Shown here one piece after another: positions 23,290-56,955 of a DNA stretch of 64,000 bases. This DNA comes from Anthoceros angustus. Taxonomy: Eukaryota > Plantae > Anthocerotophyta. The DNA lies in the NCBI GenBank assembly GCA_010909165.1, contig MU008170.1, positions 1,488,001 to 1,552,000 of the forward strand, in the 5' to 3' direction. Made by a program: the position numbers and the translations under genes. The notes beneath the pieces were generated by a model. That model worked only from the letters and a program-made list of their open reading frames with translations, made no database searches and was not told the DNA's origin. Position 1 is the stretch's first letter, and every line of letters starts with the position of its first letter.

Positions 23290-25734
23290 TCAGTACGGCC
23301 GGTAGCGGCGCCGCCGCTTGCGCTGGCAGCACCTCCCCCGCTGCCGCCTCCCTGCCTGTTCGGGAGAATGCCATGGCCTCCCATTCTACCACCACCACCC
23401 CCGCCTCCGCCCCCCTGTCTATATGGGGCAGACCCGCCTTGGGGGCCAGGTTGTTGCCTGCATGAGACATCCGTGGTCTTCAGGTCAGGGCCAGAGGCAG
23501 AGCTGCAGAGTACGTAGCCTGAGGCAAAAGGGGTTTTACAAAGAGCACACAATTGAAAACGACCAAAGGCTGGGGAAAGAAGGATTACAGGACATAGCCG
23601 ATGCGACCATCCGGAAGCATCATCGGCACCATTGTCATGCCCGCTGGAGGAGGACCTCTGCCGTATATGACAGGCTGCAGAGACCCAGGACGAATAGAGC
23701 ATGAAAAATCAGCACCGAAAATTGGAGATTTGTAACCAACCGTGTGCTGGCTTCGGCGTTTGCAGAAACACGAACCTGAGAGTAGCCCCTGGCTTGACCA
23801 TATCCGGCTGCCACAGCACCGTACATGTCGGCAGCATAGCCGAAGTTTACCCTAGTTTGATACTGAGGTAGAAGACCAGCTCTTTGAGGAGGATAGGCAG
23901 GCTCCAGGCCCGCAGGCCGCTTCTCAGCAGGAGGTTTGGCCAAGGACGTCTCCAGCCATCGCCCTGCAAGTGCACTCACCGTCAAGCGCTACTCTGGTGT
24001 CTTCGACGTGCTGTGCCCACATGCCAAGGCAGAAAGTAAAGCCACATACCTTCCAGCTCGTATCTCTCTGACTTCTCGATAGCTTTAAGAGCACTGCTGC
24101 GCTCGGCAAAGTGGACGAAACCAAAATCACGCTTGGCTTGCCCAGGTTTCGGTGCTGGCAACACCACCTTTGTGACTTCGCCGTGGTGCTCAAACAATTT
24201 CTGCAACTGCTCTTCAGTCACTGTGTCCGGAAGATTCCTTACGTATACAACCTTCACCTGCTACAAGCACGAACATACGTCAGTGTCTTCACACCTAGAT
24301 GCATTCGTCATGAACCACGATTACAACTACTACCTGCGACATAGCACTTGAATCAGAGCCACTCCGAGGATCCGCCCAGCTAATCGTGGGAGCATTGCTC
24401 CCGAGCCTGAAACTGGAGTTTGACATAACTCTTCTGGCATGATCAGCACAGGCATGATTATAGTACTCCACAAACGCAAAACCTCTATTCCTACTTGGAT
24501 TCTTCGGATCCTGCCAACACCAGCAGCCCAGCACCTGTCAGCTCTAAAGCATGGCCCGCAAGAACAGAATCCCGCAACAGCCCACATTGTGACAAGCAGA
24601 TAAGCTTCCAACCACGTGAAAAGCAGCAGAGCTAGCACGGATACAATGCACAAGGCTATCAAACTGCACTTTAAGAGGACAACAAAGAGTAAAAAGAAAA
24701 AGCTGAATACCTTAAGAAGCTCAACACTCTGAATTCCCGGCCCTTGCTCAGCAAGCACTTTCTCAAGCTCATCTTTATCCCACGCTTTTGGAATGTTACC
24801 CACAAAGAGTCGGTGCTTAGATTGCGAGTGGGAGAACCGCAACTTCTTACCCTGCAGTCAGCAATGTCCATACATTTGTCCCTGCCAAGTCAGAACTAAA
24901 ATAAGTATTCATGCACCCAACACACAAGGGCAGGATAAGACTGTAACCAACCTTCAACTCAGAATCGCTCAAACTCTCAATTGCTTTCTCCGCACTCTCT
25001 TTATTGGTGAATGTCACAAAAGCATATCCCTTGTTTTGTCCTGTGTCTTTATCCTTCAAAAGGCGCACCTAAATAGCACAGGGGAATGAAAAACAAGCAA
25101 ACATTTCCAACCACACACTTTGCCCTAAGGGGCAAGCACACAACAACTAACTCTTGCGAGCTTTGGAGAAACAAATTGTTTCATCACGTCATGGGGAAGG
25201 AAAAAGACATACCTCATAGATGTCCCCACAGGAAGAGCAGAGTGACCGAAGATCCTCCTCTGTGGTGTCACGAGTGATCCCACCGACAAAAACCTCCGAT
25301 CCATGAGGAGGCCGAGTGAGAAGCTCCTTGCTCTTCTCTCCATCGTCCTTCAACGGTTGTTTTTCTTCCTCGGCATGGACAACATCCTCAGCATCGATTG
25401 CATCGACTTCCTCCTCTACTGCTTTCACTTCCTGTGCTCCATTCCCAGCACCAGCTTCATGGTCCGTCTCATGCTCATCCTGGTAGCCGCCGCCTTCCTC
25501 CTCGGCCATGTCAAGATCAAGCCCCTCTTGACCATCCTGTTTGTCCTCATCTTCCTCCTCATCTTCCTCCTCCTCTACGTCACCATCACCGTCACCATCG
25601 ACATCCACCTCATCATCATCCACAAGCTCTTCAGCTTCCACATCCCCTTCAATATCAACCTGCTCTTCGTCATGGTCGTGGTCGTGTTCGTGGTCGTCAT
25701 GCAGCACCTCTGGGGATGCTTCTGGATCGGACAT
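23290..25734 (-). CDS. hnRNP Q/R-like (LIF2-family) RNA-binding protein with an acidic N-terminus and three RRMs; apparent 1-bp frameshift in the last exon
   Basis: PPHGSEVFVGGI, NKGYAFVTF, HRLFVGNIPKAW, RNRGFAFVEYYNHACAD, VKVVYVRNLP, RDFGFVHFAERSSAL and MVPMMLPDGRIGYVL lie across GT-AG exons. The family-typical C-terminus RRYRPY* ends at 23290 in a shifted frame; the uncorrected frame stops at 23256. Confidence 0.9.
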
Positions 25735-26944
25735 TGCCCTCTTCTTGCCTCGCGCAGATGCAAGCACCACCACCTGAGAAGTTCGTGTGCAGCTGTGGAG
25801 GAATAGGAGACAGGAGCATTTGCAGAGAGGGAGTGACAAGAGGAAAAGAATGAGGACATATGAGAGGGCTGCTGAGTGAGAATCTTGAAGGCAATGCTGA
25901 GAGGGCCATGAGAAAAGTGAGGATATAGCAAATATGTGACTCTGTGTATGTGAAGGACTGAGGAAAAAGACTACACTGCGAGAGGAGTCAGCTGACAGAG
26001 GCCCTCAATCAGCAAGAGAAGTACAGTATATAAGCCTTGTGAAAGTGATATCAATGAGGACGTCCCACATGTGCACAGAAGAACACACGCATTTCTCAGA
26101 GTTAAGCTGCTGCGCGAAAAATCGATGCTCCATGTCTTACCATGGTCTTTCAGTGTGGAAAAGAAGAAAGTAGGCATAATACCTCAGAAGCTACCAGTCA
26201 CACAGAATACCTCACAAGCTACTACTCAAACAAACAGCAGAGCGGTGCAAATGTCCACGAACGGTGCAGACCGTCGTGGGAAGCCAGGAGGCGAGCTAAT
26301 GCTTACCACGAAACTCTAGCGTCGGAATTGGCGGACGCACTTCAAGTCACGCACGCAAACCGAACTCAGTCAGCCTCAGCCAGGCAAGCAAAGCCATTCG
26401 AGCACACAACTGGGAGAGCCGTGAGATCGGGCCACCCCAGTAGCAGAGCAGGATGGAAACGATGCATCCCGTCCCCCAAGAGCATGCCACTACAGAGGCG
26501 CCCCAGTTTCAAGATCCCAGCGAACCCCCACAACTGGGCAACCCCTGCAATGCACATCCATCCATGACGCATATCAAACGGTGCAGCAAAGGGAGAGGAC
26601 GAAGACGTGGTACCTGACACGATGTGCCGCGGGCGGCAGTCGCAAGCACGGTGGCAGGCCACCCGGGGTCCCAGACGACCGCGTCCAGCTTTCTCTGCTT
26701 CTCTCTTGCTTCGCTACTGCAGCAACGGCTGCACCACTTGGGGCAGGCAGATGGCGCAATTCCTCCCCTCGGGGGTTTCGCCTCCTTAATTTTCTCACAC
26801 CCCCGTCCCACCTATTCTTCACCACCCCAACCCCACACTACCTTCCTCCTAGCTCCACATATATATATATATATATACGCTGCATTCGTATCTTTCGTTA
26901 CATATTTACTATAAATACTTTTGATTATTTGCAATCGTTCAAGT

Positions 26945-27439: not shown

Positions 27440-27960
27440 AGTTATTTGATGAATAAAACACAGCAAATCTCTTGTATAGTATATGTAAGTGGGATAACTC
27501 TATGTACTCTACAAGAGTGTGGGAGAACACCCCCAATAGTTAGTGGAGAACTATTGGGGGTGTTCTCACCTTTCATGTAATATCCCAATATGTAGTACCA
27601 AATTTGTTTCCAAGCAGCAGACAACCACAATTTGAAAAGGTTTACTCTTTGTTGGGTTGTGTGAAACCAAAACACAGCTGAATATTAGCCAAGAGCATGC
27701 TTAGTATGGTAAAATTATCAGAATTTGCTGAAGTGTTTAGAGAAGATGTCTAGCCCAAGATATCGACAAATCCACTTCGATACATACTCTCACATAAGAA
27801 TTCCAACTAATCCCTCTAGTAACTTTCTTTTCTAGAAGAGTTCTTAACTCAGAATGTTCAGACTTTGCACGATACATATCAGATAATGAGGATTCCATCT
27901 TTTCTTTTCTGGTAAGAAAGAATGCGTAGAAGTACCTTGGTTTTCTCGCCATAAGGTACA
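27440..27960 (-). mobile_element. Degenerate LINE ORF1-like fragment
   Basis: YVRVCIEVDLS resembles the plant L1 ORF1 motif (ARVCVEVDLS); the surroundings are AT-rich and interrupted by stops. Confidence 0.35.
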
Positions 27961-28379
27961 CTCACACAATCTAAACCCTAAACCCTAAACATCATTCAGA
28001 CGGGGCATTACTAGATATCAAGGCTGAAAGTCCAACCGCGGATCACCAGTGTTCAGCCTCCAGGCGATGGTCCCATTGCCGAAGTTGCTATGCTGCGATG
28101 AGGTTTGAAGGAGCTTTCACCTTTGCCACCCAACGGCACGAGGTTACAAACACTAGTCTCCCTTCCCAGCTTCAAAGTTAGCCATCCACTTCAGATAGTT
28201 GGTATGTTTGGATGCTTTAATACCTGCAAAATCAGATCTGTGATGACAATGCCAAGCTGAGAACAAGCAAGGGATTGCCTGACATACCTGGATTCCACGT
28301 TTCTGAGACATAACAGAGAGTGGGCCGTTCGTCTGTACATCCTTCGGGATCGGAAGAAGGTCCAGAGCCCATAGCAAGC

Positions 28380-31300
28380 TCAATGGTGATCACCACAAGA
28401 ACACATCCCACCCTTGAAATGATGCACACGGTGTGCATCCCTGACTACTATCTCCCGCTGCTCAATCTTAGAGAGAATCTTACTTCCACTGTGACAATCG
28501 TTGCACATCCTCAAGTTTTTAGTGACTAAAAGAGGGGTTCCTTTAGGAGTGTGGAGGAGACCAAAAGCAATGGCAAGTTTCTCAGCATGTCCACAAAGGG
28601 CGTCTTCTTTTTCCTTTGCAGATATGCGCTTCAGAACCAGGTCAGTGACAGGAAGATGTCCCTCACCCTTCAGTTGTCTATTCAAAGTCTTCAGCTTGAG
28701 AGATATATCATCCCACTTCTCTCCCACAAGAAACTCATGTACCTTGTTGTCTACTTCAATCAAGGCCCTCGCTGGCATCTTGCAGGCACCTGCATTTTTT
28801 CTCAAGTTTTCTATCTCCTCTACATCCCTCCACCTGCCAGCACCCGCATAGATGCTCGACATTAGGACATAAGCACCAGCTTGGTGAGGCTCCAGCTGCA
28901 CGATACGGTTGAAGTAAGTTCTTCCTCTCTCTACATTGCCATAGCACTTGCAGGCATTCAGCAAAGACATCCACCCGACAATGTCGGGCTCCCATGGCAT
29001 ACTTTCTAGCAGGCATTCGGCGTCATCCAGACATCCTGCCCTGCCAAGAAGATCGACCATACATGTGTAGTGCTCAAGTGTAGGCACAATGCCAAACAAT
29101 TCTTCCATCATTGTGAAGTACTGCTGACCTTCTTCTACCCAGGCCACATGACAGCATGCAACAAGAAGAGCCGTAAATGTGGCTTCATTGGGTTCAACTC
29201 CCTGTGCTTGCATAGCTTGAAAACATTGGATGGCTCTCTCACAATCATTGTGTTGGCCATAACCATTTATGAGCGCCGTCCATGTCACAACATTCCTAGA
29301 AGACAATCTATCGAACACAATCTGGGCCTCCTCAAGCCTTCCACATTTGGCATACATGTCAACAAGAGTGTTTCCAACACTGATATCTGCTTCAAAACCT
29401 CCTTTGAAGAGCTGGGTATGGATCCGCTTGCCCTCACCTATGGCTCCCATGCTCGCACACACTTTCAGAATGCATGCAAAGGTTACTGCGTTTGGAGCCA
29501 CATCCATGCTCTGAAACAATGTGAGTGCTTCTTGACTGAGTCCATGCTGGGCATATACTGCTATCATGGAAGTCCAGATCACGACATCCTTGTTGGAGAT
29601 TTTGTTAAACACTGTACGGGCATCATTCAAGTACCCCCACTTCGCATACATGTCAATAAGAGCGGTCCCCACAGAAACATCTGTTTCAAGCCCCAATTTG
29701 AGGATCTGCTCGTGAATCCTCTTGCCTTCTTTCGTAGCTCCAATGCTTCCACAAAGTTGCAACACTGTCACAAATGTGGACTTTTCAGGAGTCACAAGGC
29801 TGTCCAGCTCCATTGCTCTGTATAGTTCTATGCCTTCTTGGGCATGCCCGTTCAGGGCATATCCTGCAATCATCGCATTCCATGTTACCACGTTCCTGAC
29901 TGGCAGACAGTCAAACACTCTCCTTGAATCTTCCACACTTCCACACTTTGCAAACATGTCCACTAGTGCACTCCCAACAAACAAATCTGCATCTAGTCCT
30001 CTGTCTACTATCTCAGCATGCATGCGCCTGCCCTCATGTAGAGATCCAATTGTTCCACAAGCTTTGAGGATACTAACAAGCGTCACAGCTGTCGACACGA
30101 CACCTGCTACTTGCATCCTGCCATATAGGTTCAGCACTTCTTCAGCAAACCTGTATTTTGCATACCCACCTATCATAGCGTTCCATGTCACCACATCCTT
30201 GGTCAGCAATCTCTCAAACACCGTGCGGGCATCGCGCAAGCTACCAGACCCAGCATACATGTCCAACAGAGCGTTCCCCACAGATACGTCTGATCCAAGT
30301 CCTTTTTCAAGGATCCGACCATGAATTCTCCTCCCTTCCTGCAACGCCCGTTCCCCTAGACCACTACATGCTTTCAATGCAGTCACATATGTTGTGCTGT
30401 CTGGCTCCATGCCATCCTGCTCCATCCTGGTGTAGAGAGTGAGGGCCTCTACATTCAGCTCATTCTGAACGTATGCAGTAGCCATGACATTCCACGTGAT
30501 TACGTCCTTGGTTGGAAGCCTGTCAAAGACACTGCGGGCCTCCTCCAGGCTCCCACACTTTGCAAACATGTCAACTAATGCACACCCGACAAACTTATCC
30601 AATTCCACCCCTCGTTTCAGAATTATAGCGTGAACCTGCTTACCAGCCTGAAGCGCCCCTAAGCCGCTACAAACTTTCAAGATTGTGGCAAAGGTCAGAT
30701 TGTTGGGAGCTGTCCTGCCATCCTCTTCCATACGCCAGAACAAGCGAAGAGCCTCCTGCCCAAGTCCAAGGTGGCCATATCCGCCTATCATAGTGGTCCA
30801 TGCCACAACATCCCTGCTCGGAAACCTGTCAAAAACCTTATGAGCATCATCCAACCTCCCGCATTTCACATACATATCCAGCAAACTGTTCCCTACAAAA
30901 GCATCCAACTCAAGCCCCTTCTCCACAATCTGCGAGTGAACACTCATCCCCTCTTTCAAAGCTTGCAGACTGCCACACACCTTCAGAACGCAAGCATATG
31001 TTACATTATCAGGACTCAACCCGCTGTGCACCATATCCATGAACAGTTCTAGGGCTTCCATCCCAAGTCCATTTTGCGCATACCCTGCAATCATAGCACT
31101 CCATGTCACCACATTCCGCACAGAAATTCTGTCAAACACTTCCCGAGCTTCATCCACAGCACTGCACTTCGCATACATATCCACCAGTGTACTGCCCACA
31201 AACACGTTCGACTCCATTCCAGCGCCCATCACATCAGCATGGACCTCCTTCCCTGAATTCACATCACCTGCACTTGCACAAGCCTTAAGCACAGCCACAA

Positions 31301-31859
31301 AAACATAGTCATTCGGCCTGACACACGACCCCCGCAGCTCCTTGTACAACCTGACACCCTCGTGAGCCTGCCCGTACTCAGCATAAGCTGCGATCATGGA
31401 AGCCCACACAAACGTGTCAGGTGCTGCCACTTTCTCAAACACCAAGCTCGCTTCCCGCAAGCTCCCTTGAGCAGCATACATGCGGATAAGGTGGTTGGCC
31501 AGAAAGGTGTCCGATTCCAACCCAATTTTCACGATTAGAGCATGGGCACGCCTGCCCACCGCCCAATCTTTCTTCTCGGTACAGCCTTTCACCAGCCGGT
31601 ACAACATGGGTGCAGACCAGGAGCTTCCATGTTGACTCATGTGGTCCAGTTCTCGTGATGCCTGCTCAAGTAACTCATTCCAGGCTCCATGCTCCGAGCT
31701 GCGTGGACGAATTTGCGTTTCTTGCCTGGCAAGTGAGGAGACAGTATTCGCTCCAAGAACCCAGCAAAAAGCACACGTTTGCTGCGTGGTGCGGGTGAGG
31801 CAGCTCAGAGAGATGAGCGAAGAGCCCTTGACACCATGGCACCTCCGGAAACGCCTCAT
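28380..31859 (-). CDS. PLS-class PPR protein with E1-E2 and a DYW:KP-type deaminase domain (candidate U-to-C organellar editing factor); true N-terminus uncertain
   Basis: An uninterrupted 1159-aa ORF with ~26 P/L/S repeats ending P2-L2-S2-E1-E2, followed by KMPARALIEV...LCGHAEKLAIAFGLL...KNLRMCNDCH...RDAHRVHHFKGGMCSCGDHH*. Confidence 0.95.
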   Translation of the reverse strand: MRRFRRCHGVKGSSLISLSCLTRTTQQTCAFCWVLGANTVSSLARQETQIRPRSSEHGAWNELLEQASRELDHMSQHGSSWSAPMLYRLVKGCTEKKDWAVGRRAHALIVKIGLESDTFLANHLIRMYAAQGSLREASLVFEKVAAPDTFVWASMIAAYAEYGQAHEGVRLYKELRGSCVRPNDYVFVAVLKACASAGDVNSGKEVHADVMGAGMESNVFVGSTLVDMYAKCSAVDEAREVFDRISVRNVVTWSAMIAGYAQNGLGMEALELFMDMVHSGLSPDNVTYACVLKVCGSLQALKEGMSVHSQIVEKGLELDAFVGNSLLDMYVKCGRLDDAHKVFDRFPSRDVVAWTTMIGGYGHLGLGQEALRLFWRMEEDGRTAPNNLTFATILKVCSGLGALQAGKQVHAIILKRGVELDKFVGCALVDMFAKCGSLEEARSVFDRLPTKDVITWNVMATAYVQNELNVEALTLYTRMEQDGMEPDSTTYVTALKACSGLGERALQEGRRIHGRILEKGLGSDVSVGNALLDMYAGSGSLRDARTVFERLLTKDVVTWNAMIGGYAKYRFAEEVLNLYGRMQVAGVVSTAVTLVSILKACGTIGSLHEGRRMHAEIVDRGLDADLFVGSALVDMFAKCGSVEDSRRVFDCLPVRNVVTWNAMIAGYALNGHAQEGIELYRAMELDSLVTPEKSTFVTVLQLCGSIGATKEGKRIHEQILKLGLETDVSVGTALIDMYAKWGYLNDARTVFNKISNKDVVIWTSMIAVYAQHGLSQEALTLFQSMDVAPNAVTFACILKVCASMGAIGEGKRIHTQLFKGGFEADISVGNTLVDMYAKCGRLEEAQIVFDRLSSRNVVTWTALINGYGQHNDCERAIQCFQAMQAQGVEPNEATFTALLVACCHVAWVEEGQQYFTMMEELFGIVPTLEHYTCMVDLLGRAGCLDDAECLLESMPWEPDIVGWMSLLNACKCYGNVERGRTYFNRIVQLEPHQAGAYVLMSSIYAGAGRWRDVEEIENLRKNAGACKMPARALIEVDNKVHEFLVGEKWDDISLKLKTLNRQLKGEGHLPVTDLVLKRISAKEKEDALCGHAEKLAIAFGLLHTPKGTPLLVTKNLRMCNDCHSGSKILSKIEQREIVVRDAHRVHHFKGGMCSCGDHH

Positions 31860-32485
31860 CTTCCTCTACAGCCCTGCAGGACAAGCCACCAGATCCCTGC
31901 AGCCTTGAGATGAGCCTGTACGGCCTGTACCATTTCTCCATAGGACATTCCACTATGAGACTCACAGAACAATTCAAGTCCCACGACCAGGTTTGCAATC
32001 CATCCTTCAAACCTGCACACGGGTGAACCTAGTTGATTTCCCACGCGAACAGCTTCCATTGTCCGTCTTGAAGTTCGAAATACAAGTTTGCTTGTGTAAA
32101 TGGATACCTAGCAAAAATGTTGGTGTAGGAAACAGGCTCGCAGTGGCATTGAGAGCTTTCGCTCCATTCAGTGCCATTGACAGGCTTTCGCTGCATCTGT
32201 AGCTGTGGCCACAAGCTTCGGGCCACATACATCATTAATGCATTTGGAGACTTTTATATAGATATTTCAAAGTATATATCCAGATGGACACACATTTATA
32301 AGAACGCCGTGATTAAGCATCCTGAGCTTGGATCGGTACTTAGATGGGGTGCCTAAAGGGAGTGGATGCCCTTGGTGCAAGTAGCTTAGGCACACCATGG
32401 TACAAGTTGTTAAGTACCAAGTCCCATGACGGAAATCCGTCCTTAGTGGACTTAAATAGAATTCTTCTTCTTCTTCTTCACACTT

Positions 32486-32681
32486 GGATTTTTTATTTTA
32501 AATTTTATTTCAAGGCCTGGGATTTTTATTTCAAGCCCTTAGGATTTTTTATTTCAAGTTTTATTTTAAGCCCTGGAGATTTTTTATTTCAAGTTTTATT
32601 TTAAGCCCTGGGGATTTTTTATTTCAAGTTTTATTTCAAGCCTTGGGGATTTTTTATTTCAAGTTTTATTTCAAGCCCTGG
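32486..32681. repeat. ~31 bp AT-rich minisatellite (ggattttttatttcaagttttattttaagccct)
   Basis: About six to seven tandem copies, some partial, are directly visible. Confidence 0.9.
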
Positions 32682-34795
32682 GAGCACGCCCATAGCGCAA
32701 TTCCAACTATAGACACACCAAAACCTTCCTCAGGTTGTGCTCCGGAGGAGGCAAAACAAGTCCGTTGTTGGCTGGCTTGCCCGTGTCCTCTTCCGCAAAG
32801 GTGTAGAGGTCGTGCCTATCTCGCACGCCTGGAAGACCTTGCCATTAGGATGATTGTCGATGGAGGAGTCGAGCCCTTTGTTGAAATCAATAATTACACT
32901 CCACCTAGAAGGAATCAGTGTAGGAAGGCTACAGAGCAGCCTCGTCGTCAAAGGCAGAGTAAGAGTGCTCAAATGGTGATGGCCGAATTATCCGTTGGTG
33001 ACTGTGAAGGGCGAGTCCATGCCATAGGGCTCTAGAAGATCGTCAGCGGTCTCCGGAAAACCGATTTAGAGTGCTTCGGAAGGATTCAAAGCGGCCAGAT
33101 GGTAGCTGCGGATTGTATCCCAAGTCGAAGGGCTGCGAGAACTCGAGCTTACTTGCAGATGAGTAGCATCACAACCAGCTACTGCTCCGCAGCTCCTCTT
33201 CCCGGTTGCGCGCCCCGATCATCCTCTTCCCGGTTGTGCGCCTAGATCATCCTGCCGAAATGGCGTGCTAGCTAGGTGCGTCCGCCATGTTGGAGTTTAA
33301 AGGCTAGGGACATCTGCAAAAGAAGGGGTGAAACTTCTGAATATCCCAAATGGCATGCCCTAGATAGTAGCATCCCATCCAAGCATTGATCGGTCCCAAG
33401 GCCGGCTTAACTGGGGAGTTCCAATGAAGTCAAGTAAGGGAGGACATTACCAAAGGCCCGAGGCTGTTTAAGTCTGCCTGCGCTGTTGAAAGGTTGGGAA
33501 AAAAAAAAGGATTGCCGTAGAGACGTGGATGAGAAAATGTGGACATTATCGGAAGCCGTGGACATAATAAAGAGAGATTCAAAATCCGACTGCTCCTTAT
33601 CGACACAATCATTCCGACCTACAGATGTGTCACAGGAAAAGACAAGCTTTTTGGTGCGGGGCCGAGACGAAACGAGTGCAACTCATCACGAGGCACACAA
33701 GGCCCGTTTAATAGAAAGAAGATGGCGGTGCGGTGGCGACGTTTGTGGCGACTCATTAATGCTGTCTGACGCTGATATTTGAGCTGGATAAATAAAATCC
33801 CTTTGCCCTTCACACGCCCGCGCCATTTCGCGGACGGTGGGGCCGGCGACTGTCCTTGGACTTAACTCTGCCGTTAACTGCGCATTAAAACTTCAGGCCG
33901 GCTTCCGCCTTCGCGCAGCCCTAGAGGTTCCCAAATTCCTCATCGGGAACATGGCCTCGGCTGGGAAGCGCTAGCCCCGGTGCGTGGAGCCCGGTGCCGC
34001 ATCCCGTTTCCCGCCGCAGCCGCAGGGCTATACGGGATCGCGATCTGCGTTGCAGTGGCCTTGTCTGCCGGGGCACGGCAAGGCCAGTCGCTCGGTCCCG
34101 ACGCGCACTCGACCTCCTTCCTTGTACTGGTGCGCCTGCGGTAGAGCAACAGCCAGCGGTGGCGGATGGCGGATGGGATGAGACTGTTGACGCACGCGGC
34201 CGCTGGCGATGGCGACGGAGCACCGAGCGCCTTCTGTCACGCTCGCGCTTGGTCGCCGCAGGAGATGGTGGAGTTGTGAAGTTCCTGTCTGAGGTGGTGT
34301 GGTGAGGTGACAGGCCGCCGCTGGCGCTTGGGACAGAGTTTCGGACGAGCGCAGAGGAAGGGAGAAAGTGAAGGGGCGCGTCTTGCAGAAGGGAAGGAAG
34401 GGATGTGAAAAATGGTGTGTGGAACGGCTCGGAGCCGTGATTTGAATGAGCTTGAGAAGAATATGGCAATTCTAAGCTCGTTCGAGGGACTGATGAGCGA
34501 GTGAGCGCCTCCTGATGCGAGAGTGGAAGGAGATTCGTTGGAAGAAGGCGGGAAGGTGATTAGGTTTTGCCTGGCCTGGGATGTTGCATGGATCTGGAAG
34601 TATGGGGGAAGCGAGCAGAGGAGGTGGAAAATTGGTGGAGGAGAGACTGCTGGCGGTTAAGTGTTTTGCCACACCTGGCCTGCGAGGTTCAGGGAGGGGG
34701 AGGAGGAGGGGAGCGGGGAGTTGGTGATTTGGTGTTGCCGATTACTTGCATGCGGTTGAGAGTCGCGGTGAGGGATCGTGGTCGAGGCCAGGAGA

Positions 34796-36592
34796 ATGGG
34801 AGGTCATGTTAGCGCCATTAAAGGGAAGCTTAGAGATTCTAAGAAGAGAGGCGGCAAAGCCCCGAAGTTGAGGATTGGAATTCTGGCGTTTGAGGTGGCG
34901 AATGTGATGTCCAAAGCTATGCAGCTGTGGCAATCCCTGAGTGAGCTGGAGATTCTGCGACTTCGAACAGAGGTGATTAAGGCGGAAGGTGTGTTGAATC
35001 TGGTGTCGGACAACGAAGCGCTGCTTCTTAGCCTCGCTTGTGAGGAGAAGCTGCAGGATTTGACTGCCGTGGCCGCCGCTGTTGCGCGGCTCGGGGGACG
35101 GTGTCAGGAGGCTGTGCTGCGGGGGTTTGAGCATATATTTAATGACATGATGAAGCAGACGATCGATGTGAGGTCGTGGGAGTTTTCCGCGAAGGAGATG
35201 GATTCGAAGATGAGGAAAATGGAGCGGTGCGTGATCTCTACCACGTCGTTGTACCAGGACCTGGAAGTTCTGGCAGATTTGGAGCAGACGCTGAAGCGGA
35301 TGCACGACGATGCGGCCAACACGCCGAAGGATGCTCTCGCGGCCATGGAGCAGAAGACTGTGTGGCAGCGGCAGGAGGTGAAGTATCTGAGGGACTTGTC
35401 GCTCTGGAACCGCACCTATGACAAGGTTGTGCGGCTTTTGGCCCGGACCGTGTGCACTATACATGGACGGATTGTGGCGGTGTTTGGCTCACCTATGCTC
35501 GGCTTGCCTCAATTCCCCCCTCGGCCGCTCAGCAATGGAGATTTGAGGCATGGCTTTTTCCCCCAACCTTCCTATCTCAGTTCTGACGGCACTCATCTGT
35601 CTGCCCGAGACGTCCATCTCTCCGACTCCCCTTCCACCTCCCCTACTCCAAACAGCTCCCGGTCTTGTGGAATGGCCATTGAGCTGTGGAGCTCCCCACC
35701 ACCTTTCAGTTCCATGCAGGAGAGGGACAGTGGTTCTCTGGCAGGTAGGGTTTCTACGGAAGTCCGACCTACCTTTTATCAAAATGACCTTAGTTCAGGC
35801 CCTCAGATCACGCAGCATAGGAACTCCATCTCTTCCTCTCCCAATTATCAAAATTCGCTTCTCTCCCACTCTCTTGTTTCCTCCGCAAATTCAAGGGTGC
35901 ATGGAGAGATCTCCCGAGCTAGCGGCTTCTATCAAGGTACTACTAGTCCAACAATTCCTCACTCTCATCCTTTTCATTCAGGTTCTCAGTACGGTGGTCG
36001 GCATTCTTCGGCTGGTCAAAACGGCCGCAATCAGGGCATGATGATGTTTCACCCGAAACATCGTATTCAAAATGCTCCTTCATCGACATTAGGAGGGTCT
36101 GCCCTTGCTCTCCACTATGCCAATGTGATCATCGTCATCGAGAAGATGGTGCGTTTTCCGCACCTAATTGCACAGGATGCGAGGGATGACTTATATCAGA
36201 TGCTGCCTAACAGCGTGCGAACGGCTTTGAGGTCGAGGCTAAGGGCTATTATGAGGGGTTACGATTCAACGAGGTATGATACTGGAATTGCTACTGATTG
36301 GAAGAGTGCCCTGGAGACCATTCTGGCCTGGCTAGCTCCCCTTGCGCACAACATGATTCGGTGGCAATCGGAGCACAATTTTGAGCAGCAACAGATGGTT
36401 GCCAGGACAAATGTGTTGTTACTTCAGACCCTCTACTTCGCAGATCAAACGAAGGCCGAGGCAGCTATAACGGAGCTGCTTGTAGGGTTGAACTATGTGT
36501 ACGGCCATGAGCAGGAAACAAGGGCAGCCGCGGCTGTGTTGGAGTACTCCAACCACGAGGAGTACGAGGAGTATCTTGATTGGCGTTTCTAG
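34796..36592 (+). CDS. DUF3475 + DUF668 protein (PSK SIMULATOR-related family), intronless
   Basis: N-terminal IGILAFEVANVMSK..EGVLNLVS and C-terminal TLGGSALALHYANVIIVIEK..DARDDLYQMLP..WLAPLAHNMIRWQSEHNFEQQ..LLQTLYFADQ are family hallmarks. The first ATG is at 34796 (MGGHVS). Confidence 0.9.
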   Translation: MGGHVSAIKGKLRDSKKRGGKAPKLRIGILAFEVANVMSKAMQLWQSLSELEILRLRTEVIKAEGVLNLVSDNEALLLSLACEEKLQDLTAVAAAVARLGGRCQEAVLRGFEHIFNDMMKQTIDVRSWEFSAKEMDSKMRKMERCVISTTSLYQDLEVLADLEQTLKRMHDDAANTPKDALAAMEQKTVWQRQEVKYLRDLSLWNRTYDKVVRLLARTVCTIHGRIVAVFGSPMLGLPQFPPRPLSNGDLRHGFFPQPSYLSSDGTHLSARDVHLSDSPSTSPTPNSSRSCGMAIELWSSPPPFSSMQERDSGSLAGRVSTEVRPTFYQNDLSSGPQITQHRNSISSSPNYQNSLLSHSLVSSANSRVHGEISRASGFYQGTTSPTIPHSHPFHSGSQYGGRHSSAGQNGRNQGMMMFHPKHRIQNAPSSTLGGSALALHYANVIIVIEKMVRFPHLIAQDARDDLYQMLPNSVRTALRSRLRAIMRGYDSTRYDTGIATDWKSALETILAWLAPLAHNMIRWQSEHNFEQQQMVARTNVLLLQTLYFADQTKAEAAITELLVGLNYVYGHEQETRAAAAVLEYSNHEEYEEYLDWRF

Positions 36593-52008: not shown

Positions 52009-53568
52009 TCAGAGTGGTGGGACTTGGTGCAGGTCGACTGTCTTGGATCCTAGGGCATCAAACCGCGGAAAGAAAGTGCCGAAGGAAAATTCTTGCGGAC
52101 CATAGGGCTCCTCTTTCTCTGGGTACGTATGCTCGGGCACCTGTTCCCACTTGCTCTCTTCCGACTTGCACATGAAAACAGACATGTTACATGGGCGACA
52201 AAAATCCAGAACATAGAACATATCCAAACTCCCTGCGATTTGGAGGCTCTCTGCGCTTAAGGAACGGTAACGCAGGCAGGGCTTGGGCTCGGGGAGGCAG
52301 AACTTGGGCTCCGGTATGGGCCTGGATTCGTGGACGACAGCCCGATCCTGGTCCTTCGAAAACCTGGTAAGACGAAATTGCCACAACGGGCAATATCCAA
52401 ATTCAAGAAGCGCAGGGGCTCTGTGACGGCAGTCGGACTGCCCAGTAGTACTGTCCTCCACAAAGAGGCAAGGGCATTGCCACCAACCTTGCAATGCGAT
52501 TAGGGTACCGGTAGCACAATGCATGTCCTCGAACCGATCCTGCTTCACCAAGTAGGCCACAATTCGCAGACTCCTGGGACTGGTGAAGTAGAATAAGCTG
52601 AAGAGCAAGTAGACGACGTCTTTGGCCGTTGTGCAACCTGCTTGGTGAAGAAAGGTACAGGTAGTACCGAAAGGGAGGCTCAAAGTATCTCCCTCCCTCC
52701 ACCGATCTTCACCAGAATCATAGATGTCAACCGTACACGAGTCATGTCGCCGACGGAAGTGAAGGATTTTGAAACTCTTGGTGTGGTCGTCCACGATAAG
52801 CTCATGCGCGTACTCGCCATGATCGTAGTACCGAGCTTCATCAGTCACCCAGTAGAAATCACGTCTGGGAGGAGGAAAAGCCACCTCCTGCCAGGCCCCG
52901 CGCAAGGGATTGCCCACCCAGTATCGGAATCTTTGACAAGCCCGGGTCCTAGGCCTCCCGCCAGTGTACCGCCAGTAACGCCAACGCTCCCGCAGCAAGA
53001 CCAGACCCGAGTCGCCTCCCGCGCCTTTGCCCACCTCCACCTCGCTGCCTTCGTCCGTGGGCAGCCGGATGTTATACCACCGGGAAGAAACTGGGTCGAA
53101 GGCGAGGCAGATTGTATTGCGGCTCTCGCGGAAAGGCAGTCGGTCGACGCCACGGTAGATTGTGTTGCGGCGGTCGAAGCTCGGCACCATGCTCGATTCG
53201 AAGCGAGGCACCGTGCGGCAGATCAACAACCAGGGCTTCCTCTTCTGGGGACCCTCAAATGCATGAGACGTGATGAATCGGTTCCACGCCCTGCTCACTG
53301 ATCGCAGCTGAGCCAGACACACTGCCGGTAACCGAGCTAAGATGTTCTCCACCACATCCTCCGGCAGCTCCTGTATCGGGCACCGCCCGGATCGCACTTG
53401 TGCCAGGCGGAGTGCGGGAAGCTGACCGAGCACTATCCCAGGCACATCCTCCTCGTCGGCCACCGCTACCTCCTCTGTGGCCGGCATCTCCAGCCCCGCC
53501 TCCGCCCCCGCCGGTAACGGAGCTAACCTGTCCCCTCCGGCAGCTCCTATATCCGGCATATCCCGCAT
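52009..53568 (-). CDS. F-box protein with a divergent kelch/FBA-like C-terminus, intronless
   Basis: LPEDVVENILARLPAVCLAQLRSVSRAWN is an F-box. AFDPVSSRW, VGNPLRGAW and DIYDSGEDRW are propeller-type motifs. The 519-aa ORF is open. Confidence 0.85.
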   Translation of the reverse strand: MRDMPDIGAAGGDRLAPLPAGAEAGLEMPATEEVAVADEEDVPGIVLGQLPALRLAQVRSGRCPIQELPEDVVENILARLPAVCLAQLRSVSRAWNRFITSHAFEGPQKRKPWLLICRTVPRFESSMVPSFDRRNTIYRGVDRLPFRESRNTICLAFDPVSSRWYNIRLPTDEGSEVEVGKGAGGDSGLVLLRERWRYWRYTGGRPRTRACQRFRYWVGNPLRGAWQEVAFPPPRRDFYWVTDEARYYDHGEYAHELIVDDHTKSFKILHFRRRHDSCTVDIYDSGEDRWREGDTLSLPFGTTCTFLHQAGCTTAKDVVYLLFSLFYFTSPRSLRIVAYLVKQDRFEDMHCATGTLIALQGWWQCPCLFVEDSTTGQSDCRHRAPALLEFGYCPLWQFRLTRFSKDQDRAVVHESRPIPEPKFCLPEPKPCLRYRSLSAESLQIAGSLDMFYVLDFCRPCNMSVFMCKSEESKWEQVPEHTYPEKEEPYGPQEFSFGTFFPRFDALGSKTVDLHQVPPL

Positions 53569-54709: not shown

Positions 54710-55951
54710 CTAGAAGGAGTTCATCTCCAGAAGGTAAGTGCGTCTCTTCACAAGAATGCTGGCAGCAGTATTGAAAGGCTCTTCAAACGCAGTAGCCACT
54801 GGCTCTTCAAATGCTCCAGACGAATACGAGGATGCGCAACCATCAGCATCCCTCCGACCTGGCTCCTGGATTTTCAGATAGTCCCCAGTGAGACGCTCCT
54901 CCCTCTTCACCTGTGTCTCACTAGGTCTAATGGCTACCAAGGTAGCACCATTAAGCCTGGTCCCACCGGGCAGCTCCAGACGTGGAGCGTACCACAGTTT
55001 CATGTTCAGTGCCGGGACCTGAGTCCGGTTAGCAGATGCAGACGGAGCAAGAGGCTTGTCTCTGAATTCGTGCAACTGTTTATGATCCATGCAGAGCGTT
55101 CCCTGGCCATCCGCGTCAGTGAGCACCAGCTTCTCCAGCGTCGGATGCTCTGCTATAATCTGCTGCAGGAGGTAATGCCTTGCCGAAGCGGCGATCAGCG
55201 AAGATATAGTCCACACAACCCTGAGCTTCAACTCTCCATCCGTGTAAAAGGACTCGGGAATACTCCCACTGTCATCCTGCTGCACACCGGCAACATCACC
55301 CCCCTCATCCCCCCCCAAGAGCATATCTTCCCCCCTATCTTGCGCCACGAGTCCTTCCAACTTCTCCACCTTCCCGTCCTTGGCCACCTGAGCAGTAGAA
55401 GCGGCACCTAGAATGACGCAGCTCTCAAGACTACTCCCAAACTCCGCCCGCCACTTCAACAACACTCCCTCGTCCACCCCGAGCTCTCCCCCGGGCAGCT
55501 CAATCCTCAAGTTCCGAATCTCCTTAAAGTTCTTCAGCACCTCCACGGGCGAGTGGTGCGAAACCTCCGCCACAATAGCCTTCTTCGGAGCCAGTAGATG
55601 CTGCAGCGCCTGCAACGGCTTCACGATGCTCCCTACCACAAACCGCATGAAATGGCTCAGCAGCCCCCGCCCCTTCCCGTGAATACTCCCGTCCTCCCCG
55701 GATATAACGCAGTCCACCTTCACCACAACGTTGTCCACGAGCGGCGCGAAATCATGAAACCGCTTCGACACCGCACAGCACCTCCCGAGCGCCTTGATAT
55801 CCGCGAGCTTGTTGAATATAAGCAGCAGCAGCGAGTCCGGGAGCTGGTCGAAATGATCCACTCCCGAGCTCTCCACCTCCATGCAGGCCAGCACCGTCTG
55901 CCTCCGGCAACTCCTCCCAAGGTCCACCACAAGAGACACCTCCTTATGCAT
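54710..55951 (-). CDS. F-box protein, AUF1/AUF2 (At1g78100/At5g46170)-like family, intronless
   Basis: DHFDQLPDSLLLLIFNK..ALGRCCAVSKRF, HHSP..VLKNF..LRIELP, LKWRAEFGSSL, SIPESFYT.G.LKLRVVWTISSLIAASARH and RRTYLLEMNSF*. An alternative start lies at 55882. Confidence 0.92.
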   Translation of the reverse strand: MHKEVSLVVDLGRSCRRQTVLACMEVESSGVDHFDQLPDSLLLLIFNKLADIKALGRCCAVSKRFHDFAPLVDNVVVKVDCVISGEDGSIHGKGRGLLSHFMRFVVGSIVKPLQALQHLLAPKKAIVAEVSHHSPVEVLKNFKEIRNLRIELPGGELGVDEGVLLKWRAEFGSSLESCVILGAASTAQVAKDGKVEKLEGLVAQDRGEDMLLGGDEGGDVAGVQQDDSGSIPESFYTDGELKLRVVWTISSLIAASARHYLLQQIIAEHPTLEKLVLTDADGQGTLCMDHKQLHEFRDKPLAPSASANRTQVPALNMKLWYAPRLELPGGTRLNGATLVAIRPSETQVKREERLTGDYLKIQEPGRRDADGCASSYSSGAFEEPVATAFEEPFNTAASILVKRRTYLLEMNSF

Positions 55952-56955
55952 CCTCCTCCACTCCAACAAACACCGGCCAAGCCTTCCAAGATCACAACAC
56001 TCGGTCCTCTACGTCAAATCCACATCCACCGCCGATCCAAACGCGCAACCTCCTCCATCTAGCTCCCTTCCTCCAGCACAGCCCCGAACCCTGCAAGAAA
56101 GCTCACAAGAACCTGCACCGAAGTCCACCCCGCGGTGCAGCGATCACATCAACTCCAAACCGAGTTTCCAGAGGCCCCGACCGCCAAATCCCACTCCCGC
56201 CTCGCCGTCACGCTCGAACGCATCCGCATCCGTTCTCCCACACTGTGCAGACGAACCACGCCCGCTCACGCTAATGCGCTTGGCATCAGCAGCTAAGGCA
56301 GACGGATTAGCGAATGGTCGGCGTCAGGGCGGCGACGGTCGGGGCTGGGCCTGCGGCTTCCGCGAACCTTCCTCCGGCCGGGCCGTCCTACTCCGGGGCT
56401 GCACATGCCGCACCTACTTCCACCTGAGGGGCGACCCTGCCACCGGCATGCCGCTTCACCACCTCATCCTCATCCGCCCGGCTCCACGCTCCCACACGCC
56501 GCGGCAACAGAGACGCCAGCAACACAACGGCAGCGACAGCAGTAGCTCTGGAGAAGCTTCAAGGCCGTGGGCAATGGCCGCTCGCGCCTCGCCCGCCTTG
56601 GCCCCGCGCGCCAGGTCTAGACGTCCTGCGCCATACATGCCGTCCCCAGGCGGTCCAGGGGCGCGCTAGGCCTGCCGCTCCCGGCGGCCCGTCTCCAAGG
56701 GTGTCACTCGCTGCAAACCCTGGAAGCTTCGCGGCTTTGACCGGCTGCTAGGGGAGGGTTTACCGGCACAGGGATAAGCCGGGACCCGCTCTTGACCGGT
56801 CAACGTGGGAAACGCACGCGCTTTCGCCTTTCGCCGCACTCGTCTCGCGTCTTGTATAGCCATTTTAAATGCTATTATTCTGGCAACAAAGCGCGTGTCC
56901 TGCCGTCTCCTGCTCCTCCACCTGAGCATGGGCACCTCGCTTTGCCTTCAAATAT

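Follow-up and report, generated by a model that had tools for sequence, protein, structure and literature searches.

An intact hornwort gene for a PLS-class PPR-E1-E2-DYW:KP protein, a candidate native U-to-C RNA editing factor of the D-x-H subgroup

Catalogued since 2020, the DYW:KP proteins are confined to lineages with U-to-C editing (PMC9478123, PMC11845758, PMC11332814), and they are defined by an altered PG box, an HAE motif, a missing xHP segment and a terminus other than DYW, with the DRH and GRP subgroups in hornworts (PMC9478123). The HAE motif supplies the zinc-binding His and the catalytic Glu, its Ala being specific for the DYW:KP class (PMC9478123). The synthetic KP2, KP3 and KP6 have U-to-C editing activity, for which K88, the proposed nitrogen-donor lysine (PMC11845758), is essential (PMC9478123, PMC11845758, PMC11332814), and in human cells KP6 works in either direction (PMC9478123). 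The DRH subgroup, described, as far as the citations in PMC9478123 go, by Gerke et al. 2020 and Gutmann et al. 2020, was the basis of the designer protein KP1; the three designs with editing activity in E. coli did not include KP1 (PMC9478123). In the literature searched on DYW:KP editing we found no native DYW:KP protein with demonstrated activity.

Here we describe a native gene of this kind in the hornwort Anthoceros angustus, found in a stretch of 64,000 nucleotides (the window; contig MU008170.1, positions 1,488,001 to 1,552,000), in which all coordinates below are given. We compare it with the hornwort forms, with the synthetic KP proteins and with canonical DYW:PG enzymes, and discuss in which direction it would be expected to edit.

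The gene, its transcript and its surroundings

The first-pass annotation had reported a DYW:KP-type domain at 28380-28790. These 411 bases turned out to be the 3' end of one unbroken minus-strand reading frame of 1159 codons, so that they take in only the last 133 residues of the encoded protein. The architecture of the gene, as it follows from the list of reading frames, Pfam, an exact contig of the sequencing run X1 and a manual partition of the repeats anchored on S and P motifs, is the following:

27756 to 32135, minus strand: probable extent of the transcript, taken from the limits of X1 coverage, with a leader of about 276 nt carrying short upstream reading frames, the coding sequence and a 3' UTR of about 620 nt
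28380 to 31859, minus strand: complete intronless coding sequence of a PLS-class PPR-E1-E2-DYW:KP protein, 1159 aa and stop
31614 to 31859, minus strand: N-terminal 82 aa, presequence-like for an organelle as judged from composition (rich in R, S and T, the first 46 aa almost without acidic residues)
28983 to 31613, minus strand: PPR array of 26 motifs, L-S-(P-L-S)x7-P2-L2-S2, aa 83-959
28782 to 28982, minus strand: E1 (34 aa) and E2 (33 aa), aa 960-1026, from the partition and from the Pfam E_motif at residues 973-1034
28383 to 28781, minus strand: DYW:KP deaminase-like domain of 133 aa, aa 1027-1159, assigned by profile scores and an AlphaFold model

On the whole protein Pfam finds several PPR families, the E_motif and, at residues 1067-1158, DYW_deaminase with an E-value of 4.5e-35, and this combination, together with the many PPR matches, excludes a chance resemblance to a PPR-DYW gene. 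Motif lengths in the partition are 35, 35 and 31 residues for the triplets and then 35, 36, 32, 34 and 33 for P2, L2, S2, E1 and E2; the canonical lengths of P2, L2 and S2 are 35, 36 and 32, as in the C-terminal motifs here. The manual partition and Pfam thus give the layout of the PLS class, with P-L-S triplets followed by P2-L2-S2, E1, E2 and DYW. Reading the 17 P and S motifs (L motifs skipped) through the PPR code, as we take that code to apply, returns a target of roughly U-a-A-G-U-A-?-U-U-Y-A-?-G-A-Y-A-G.

An exact contig of 3528 nt from run X1, which comprises 29 Mb of contigs, covers 28351-31878 with zero differences and nothing skipped. Exact contigs of the same run lie at 27756-28343, 31849-32014 and 32012-32135, and depth drops outside 27756-32135, in contrast to the DNA run of the same sample (X2), whose depth is even over both borders. 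The X1 contigs fit a single unspliced mRNA of about 4.4 kb, the RNA label of this run being a guess of the tool, and the gene is apparently transcribed. Contigs of two related species, B (DNA) and C (probable RNA), span most of the gene with some 5-6% of differences, that is, about 94-95% DNA identity. Of the 161 differences of species B, at least 34 are located in the 3' UTR, of which its contig spans 450 nt.

Some details of the transcribed region are worth recording in their own right. The putative 5' leader (31860-32135, minus strand) carries several short upstream reading frames, the TGA of one of which overlaps the main ATG. Position 31793 is A in the DNA run X2 vs G in the window and in X1, which changes a CGC codon of the presequence into TGC (R23C), and is most likely an ordinary polymorphism or an assembly difference. 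Reading frames antisense to the gene, for example that at 29070-29825 on the plus strand, were set aside as by-products of a repeat-rich coding strand.

The adjoining reading frames belong to ordinary plant genes of the DUF668/DUF3475, F-box, Myb and RRM kinds. A single-exon frame of 604 aa with DUF3475 and DUF668 lies at 34778-36592 (plus strand), and F-box frames lie at 52009-53568 and 54710-55969 (both minus). At 24847-25839 (minus) there is an acidic frame, rich in Asp and Glu, which ends with the start of an RRM domain continued in a second frame, so that a multi-exon gene for an RNA-binding protein is probably located just downstream of the PPR gene. On the other side, some 150 bp before the start of the transcript, an element of about 150 bp (32280-32430) is extremely abundant in the DNA runs, with a summed contig depth of about 65,000 in X2 and about 34,000 in a further run, X3, vs a baseline of about 14; the RNA-like runs contain it too. 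One possibility is a short interspersed element or MITE of very high copy number that related species share. Beside it, at 32468-32698, stands a tandem array of an AT-rich unit of 35 nt (a 70-nt reference copy recurs every 35 nt).

Class and fold of the deaminase domain

For the class assignment 263 relatives were collected by a word-indexed search with the C-terminal 200 aa and by an exhaustive HMMER search starting from the final 169 residues (3061 matches at E<=0.001); 261 DYW domains, the query among them, were taken and sorted by diagnostic characters. A short HAE type lacking the xHP segment accounts for 26 of the 261 and includes the query, and each of these 26 has a Met (M92) before the first Cys. 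The landmarks of the query domain are these:

28752 to 28781, minus strand: variant KP box KMPARALIEV, aa 1027-1036; its first K is near-invariant in all DYW domains, and its second position, here M, is mostly K in KP domains
28581 to 28589, minus strand: HAE within LCGHAEKLA, aa 1091-1093, with the zinc-binding His, the KP-specific Ala and the catalytic Glu; H101 and E103 of our alignment A1 are invariant
28491 to 28520, minus strand: KNLRMCNDCH, with K88 (28518-28520), M92, the CxxC zinc ligands and the His, CNDC-H being aa 1119-1123
28395 to 28424, minus strand: HHF (aa 1146) and CSC (aa 1153-1155), presumably the ligands of the second zinc site, as we take from DYW:PG structures; H156 and C165 are invariant in A1, and C163 is at least 90% conserved
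28383 to 28391, minus strand: C-terminal triplet D-H-H at the end of the reading frame, DRH-like in keeping D and the final H; GDHH is followed by the stop at 28380-28382

The landmarks picked out at first pass are all confirmed here: KMPARALIEV in place of the PGxSWIE box, HAE for HSE, the intact CNDC and HHF..CSC ligands, the GDHH end, and a short region after VHEFLVG, where a gap of four residues faces the 'shpq' of the synthetic PPR-DYW protein 9kfx, the xHP segment being absent. The box reads K-M-P-A-R-A. It keeps P-A-x-A and the leading lysine (K37 of A1, at least 90% conserved across PG and KP domains), and the eponymous K is replaced by M. Counted from the first K the domain has 133 aa, or 132 as PMC11845758 numbers it. 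The query retains every one of the ten invariant columns of A1, among them H and E of HAE, CxxCH, a D, H and F of HxF and the last C, and K88 is found in 260 of the 261 DYW domains.

Class profiles built without the query scored it at 225.9 bits for the short HAE (KP) type, 203.3 for a fern-type HAE with one extra residue, 187.2 for the HCE type and 170.9 for canonical PG, and it is 57-71% identical to short HAE domains vs 44-56% to PG domains. In an IQ-TREE phylogeny of 102 domains the canonical PG/DYW clade (SH-aLRT 98) leaves the query outside. Among its same-class neighbours, short HAE domains with GDRH, GGRP and similar ends, the query is sister to a protein that we call P0002 (support 83), the two standing just outside the DRH+GRP core group (support 94). 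A constraint joining the query to the PG clade was not rejected in an AU test (p-AU 0.43), a result that we regard as uninformative because the inter-class backbone is weak on 139 columns and the PG stem can be re-attached; class membership is therefore based on the profile scores and the diagnostic characters.

Both kinds of evidence, and the PG clade that excludes the query, bear out the class named in the first-pass annotation; of the checks it had suggested, profile scoring preferred KP by 55 bits, and in the tree the query fell outside the canonical PG clade. Since the domain shows the characters by which the class is defined in PMC9478123, we assign it to DYW:KP, closest to the DRH form; the sequence comparison supports a placement nearest to the D-x-H (DRH-like) forms described from hornworts. 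With the DRH subgroup it shares PLS-type PPR motifs with E1 and E2, a short DYW domain without xHP, P-A-x-A, HAE, K88, M92 and a terminal D-x-H, and the sequences nearest to it end in GDRH. It differs in M instead of K at the second position of the box, in DHH instead of DRH, and in L/L where the DRH core has C/T.

An AlphaFold2 model of E2 and the DYW domain, built on an alignment of 112 sequences, has a mean pLDDT of 93.7. Foldseek superimposes it on 9kfx_A with a TM-score of 0.91 and an rmsd of 1.8, and returns OTP86 (7o4e, 7o4f) and DYW1 (7w86) at probability 1.00; the DYW structures matched, by sequence or by fold, were all of the PG type. The model confidently predicts the cytidine-deaminase-like DYW fold with HxE, CxxC, H and CxC ligands. 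With canonical DYW:PG enzymes (OTP86, DYW1, 9kfx) the query has in common this fold, HxE, CxxC-H, HxF, CxC and the equivalent of K88; unlike them it lacks PGxSW, xHP and the DYW terminus, has HAE for HSE and M for V before the first Cys, and the PG profile scores it 55 bits below the short KP one.

Relatives and the natural range of the MP box and the DHH end

The nearest relative in the protein collections is P0002 (1090 aa, Logan runs SRR33208241 and SRR33208242), with 57% identity; region-based and full-length searches and an exact look-up in these collections returned nothing closer, and the 94-95% copies of species B and C were seen as contigs only and are absent from the protein-collection matches. 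P0002 is colinear with the query across the whole PPR array, with six gaps over 1092 columns, and shares its DHH end; it differs in having the usual KKPAKA box and, as called, in the absence of the first ~70 residues. The code is carried by the fifth and last residues of the 17 P and S motifs, and 26 of these 34 are identical, vs 55.5% over the whole array (binomial p = 0.0095); T/S or pyrimidine-to-pyrimidine equivalents account for several of the differences. In the paralog P0003 (52% identity, ending in VDH) only 14 of the 34 are identical. P0002 is probably an ortholog of the query, and from this contrast the two proteins probably bind the same RNA site.

The first-pass annotation had also singled out MP for KP and DHH for DRH as deviations that could alter activity or direction of editing, and this part of its interpretation is not supported, in contrast to the class and the nearness to D-x-H forms, which are. 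It is true that K is the majority at the second box position of the short HAE domains (20 of 26), that the terminal triplet most often has R in the middle, and that a terminal change, F133H, influenced the direction of KP6. Against a difference from ordinary DRH proteins caused by these two residues, the 26 domains have M at the second position in two cases, L in two, R in one and Q in one, that is, other than K in six, and in the literature K88 alone is conserved in all KP domains (PMC11845758). The third position is P in 20 of the 26.

The termini vary in a similar manner: GDRH ends five domains (SDRH and GDRHVV occur as well), GGRP three and DHH three, next to GVDH, GDAH, GDNH, GDHR and others. 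The middle residue is thus free (R, H, A, N, V/D and others), D and the final H being the commoner ones, and it is this variable residue that is altered in the query, which retains D and the final H. DHH ends the query, its probable ortholog P0002 and a third protein, P0122, and so is stable and not a fresh lesion; it looks like a stable trait of the query/P0002 lineage. As far as the compared domains tell, MP and DHH are neutral variants within the natural range of the family, and we consider it very unlikely that they change activity or direction.

The same comparisons speak to the integrity of the gene. A reading of the locus as a pseudogene or an artefact was rejected, with its frame intact, its RNA-like contigs exact and its invariant columns all kept. 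For the gene to encode a catalytically silent RNA-binding protein, or to be an incipient pseudogene, would be extremely improbable in our opinion: the frame of 3.5 kb is unbroken, the ten invariant DYW columns are retained, the gene is apparently expressed, copies of 94-95% identity occur in two related species, and the specificity residues are conserved with P0002. On the sequence as it stands, the protein is a rather ordinary representative of a large known family, with nothing in it that appears mechanistically distinctive.

Proposed function and the direction of editing

We propose that this nuclear gene encodes an organelle-targeted RNA-editing factor of the PLS class. Its 26-motif array would bind a stretch of about 25 nt in a single transcript of the chloroplast or mitochondrion. 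In PPR editing factors S2 binds a base four nucleotides 5' of the edited one, and here S2 would accordingly lie opposite position -4. The DYW:KP domain would then turn the downstream uridine into cytidine, using the Zn/Glu centre with Lys88 as the nitrogen donor, in the manner suggested for the synthetic KP2, KP3 and KP6 (PMC11332814, PMC11845758). We think it rather probable, with some reserve, that the query is a native factor for U-to-C editing, of the D-x-H (DRH-like) subgroup of hornworts. The direction is something we infer for it, since the literature searched offers no native KP protein of shown activity, KP1 is missing from the designs that edited in E. coli, and the residues linked to direction are mixed.

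The GRP-based KP2 and KP3 and the fern-based KP6 belong to the same domain class as the query and share with it HAE, CxxC and K88 (PMC9478123, PMC11845758, PMC11332814), but they are consensus designs, and the GRP types lack the terminal Asp which the query has. KP6 has E64, L113, D116, I119 and F133, against G, V, A, V and H in the query. The comparison bears directly on the direction. The combined changes E64G, L113V and F133H turn KP6 into a C-to-U-only enzyme, and G64, V113 and H133 are exactly what the query carries naturally. It also has L/L at KP6 positions 6 and 17, without the Cys and Thr, favourable to U-to-C, that are present there in the DRH core. The query may thus be of the KP class by descent and yet edit C-to-U, or in both directions, in vivo rather than U-to-C only; the bidirectional action of KP6 in human cells, and the place of the DRH-based KP1 outside the designs with U-to-C activity, would agree with that.

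Such a reading remains, in our view, a minor possibility. G64, V113 and the terminal H are common to the D-x-H group as a whole, which is distributed in step with U-to-C editing, and as these direction-linked states are largely shared across the group they do not single out the query. The query has A116 and V119, both favourable to U-to-C when placed in KP6, and it keeps K88, HAE and M92 intact; effects measured with a fern-consensus protein in human cells may not transfer to a native one. A narrower version, in which the query/P0002 lineage would represent a natural KP-class enzyme with shifted or dual direction, derives from the DHH end, the position outside the DRH+GRP core, the missing Cys and Thr, and the presence of G64, V113 and H133, and we give it only a slight chance. 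If it were true, the two proteins would make a native pair for mapping the determinants of editing direction.

U-to-C editing by a native factor of the D-x-H subgroup is the reading that we retain for the query, and it is in this respect that the gene may be of use. In the literature searched, U-to-C activity is represented by synthetic consensus designs only, and these stall as RNA-protein crosslinks; the designer version of the D-x-H subgroup, moreover, was absent from the active designs. An intact and apparently expressed native gene of this subgroup, with a probable ortholog, offers a usable candidate for a first native assay of a DYW:KP protein.
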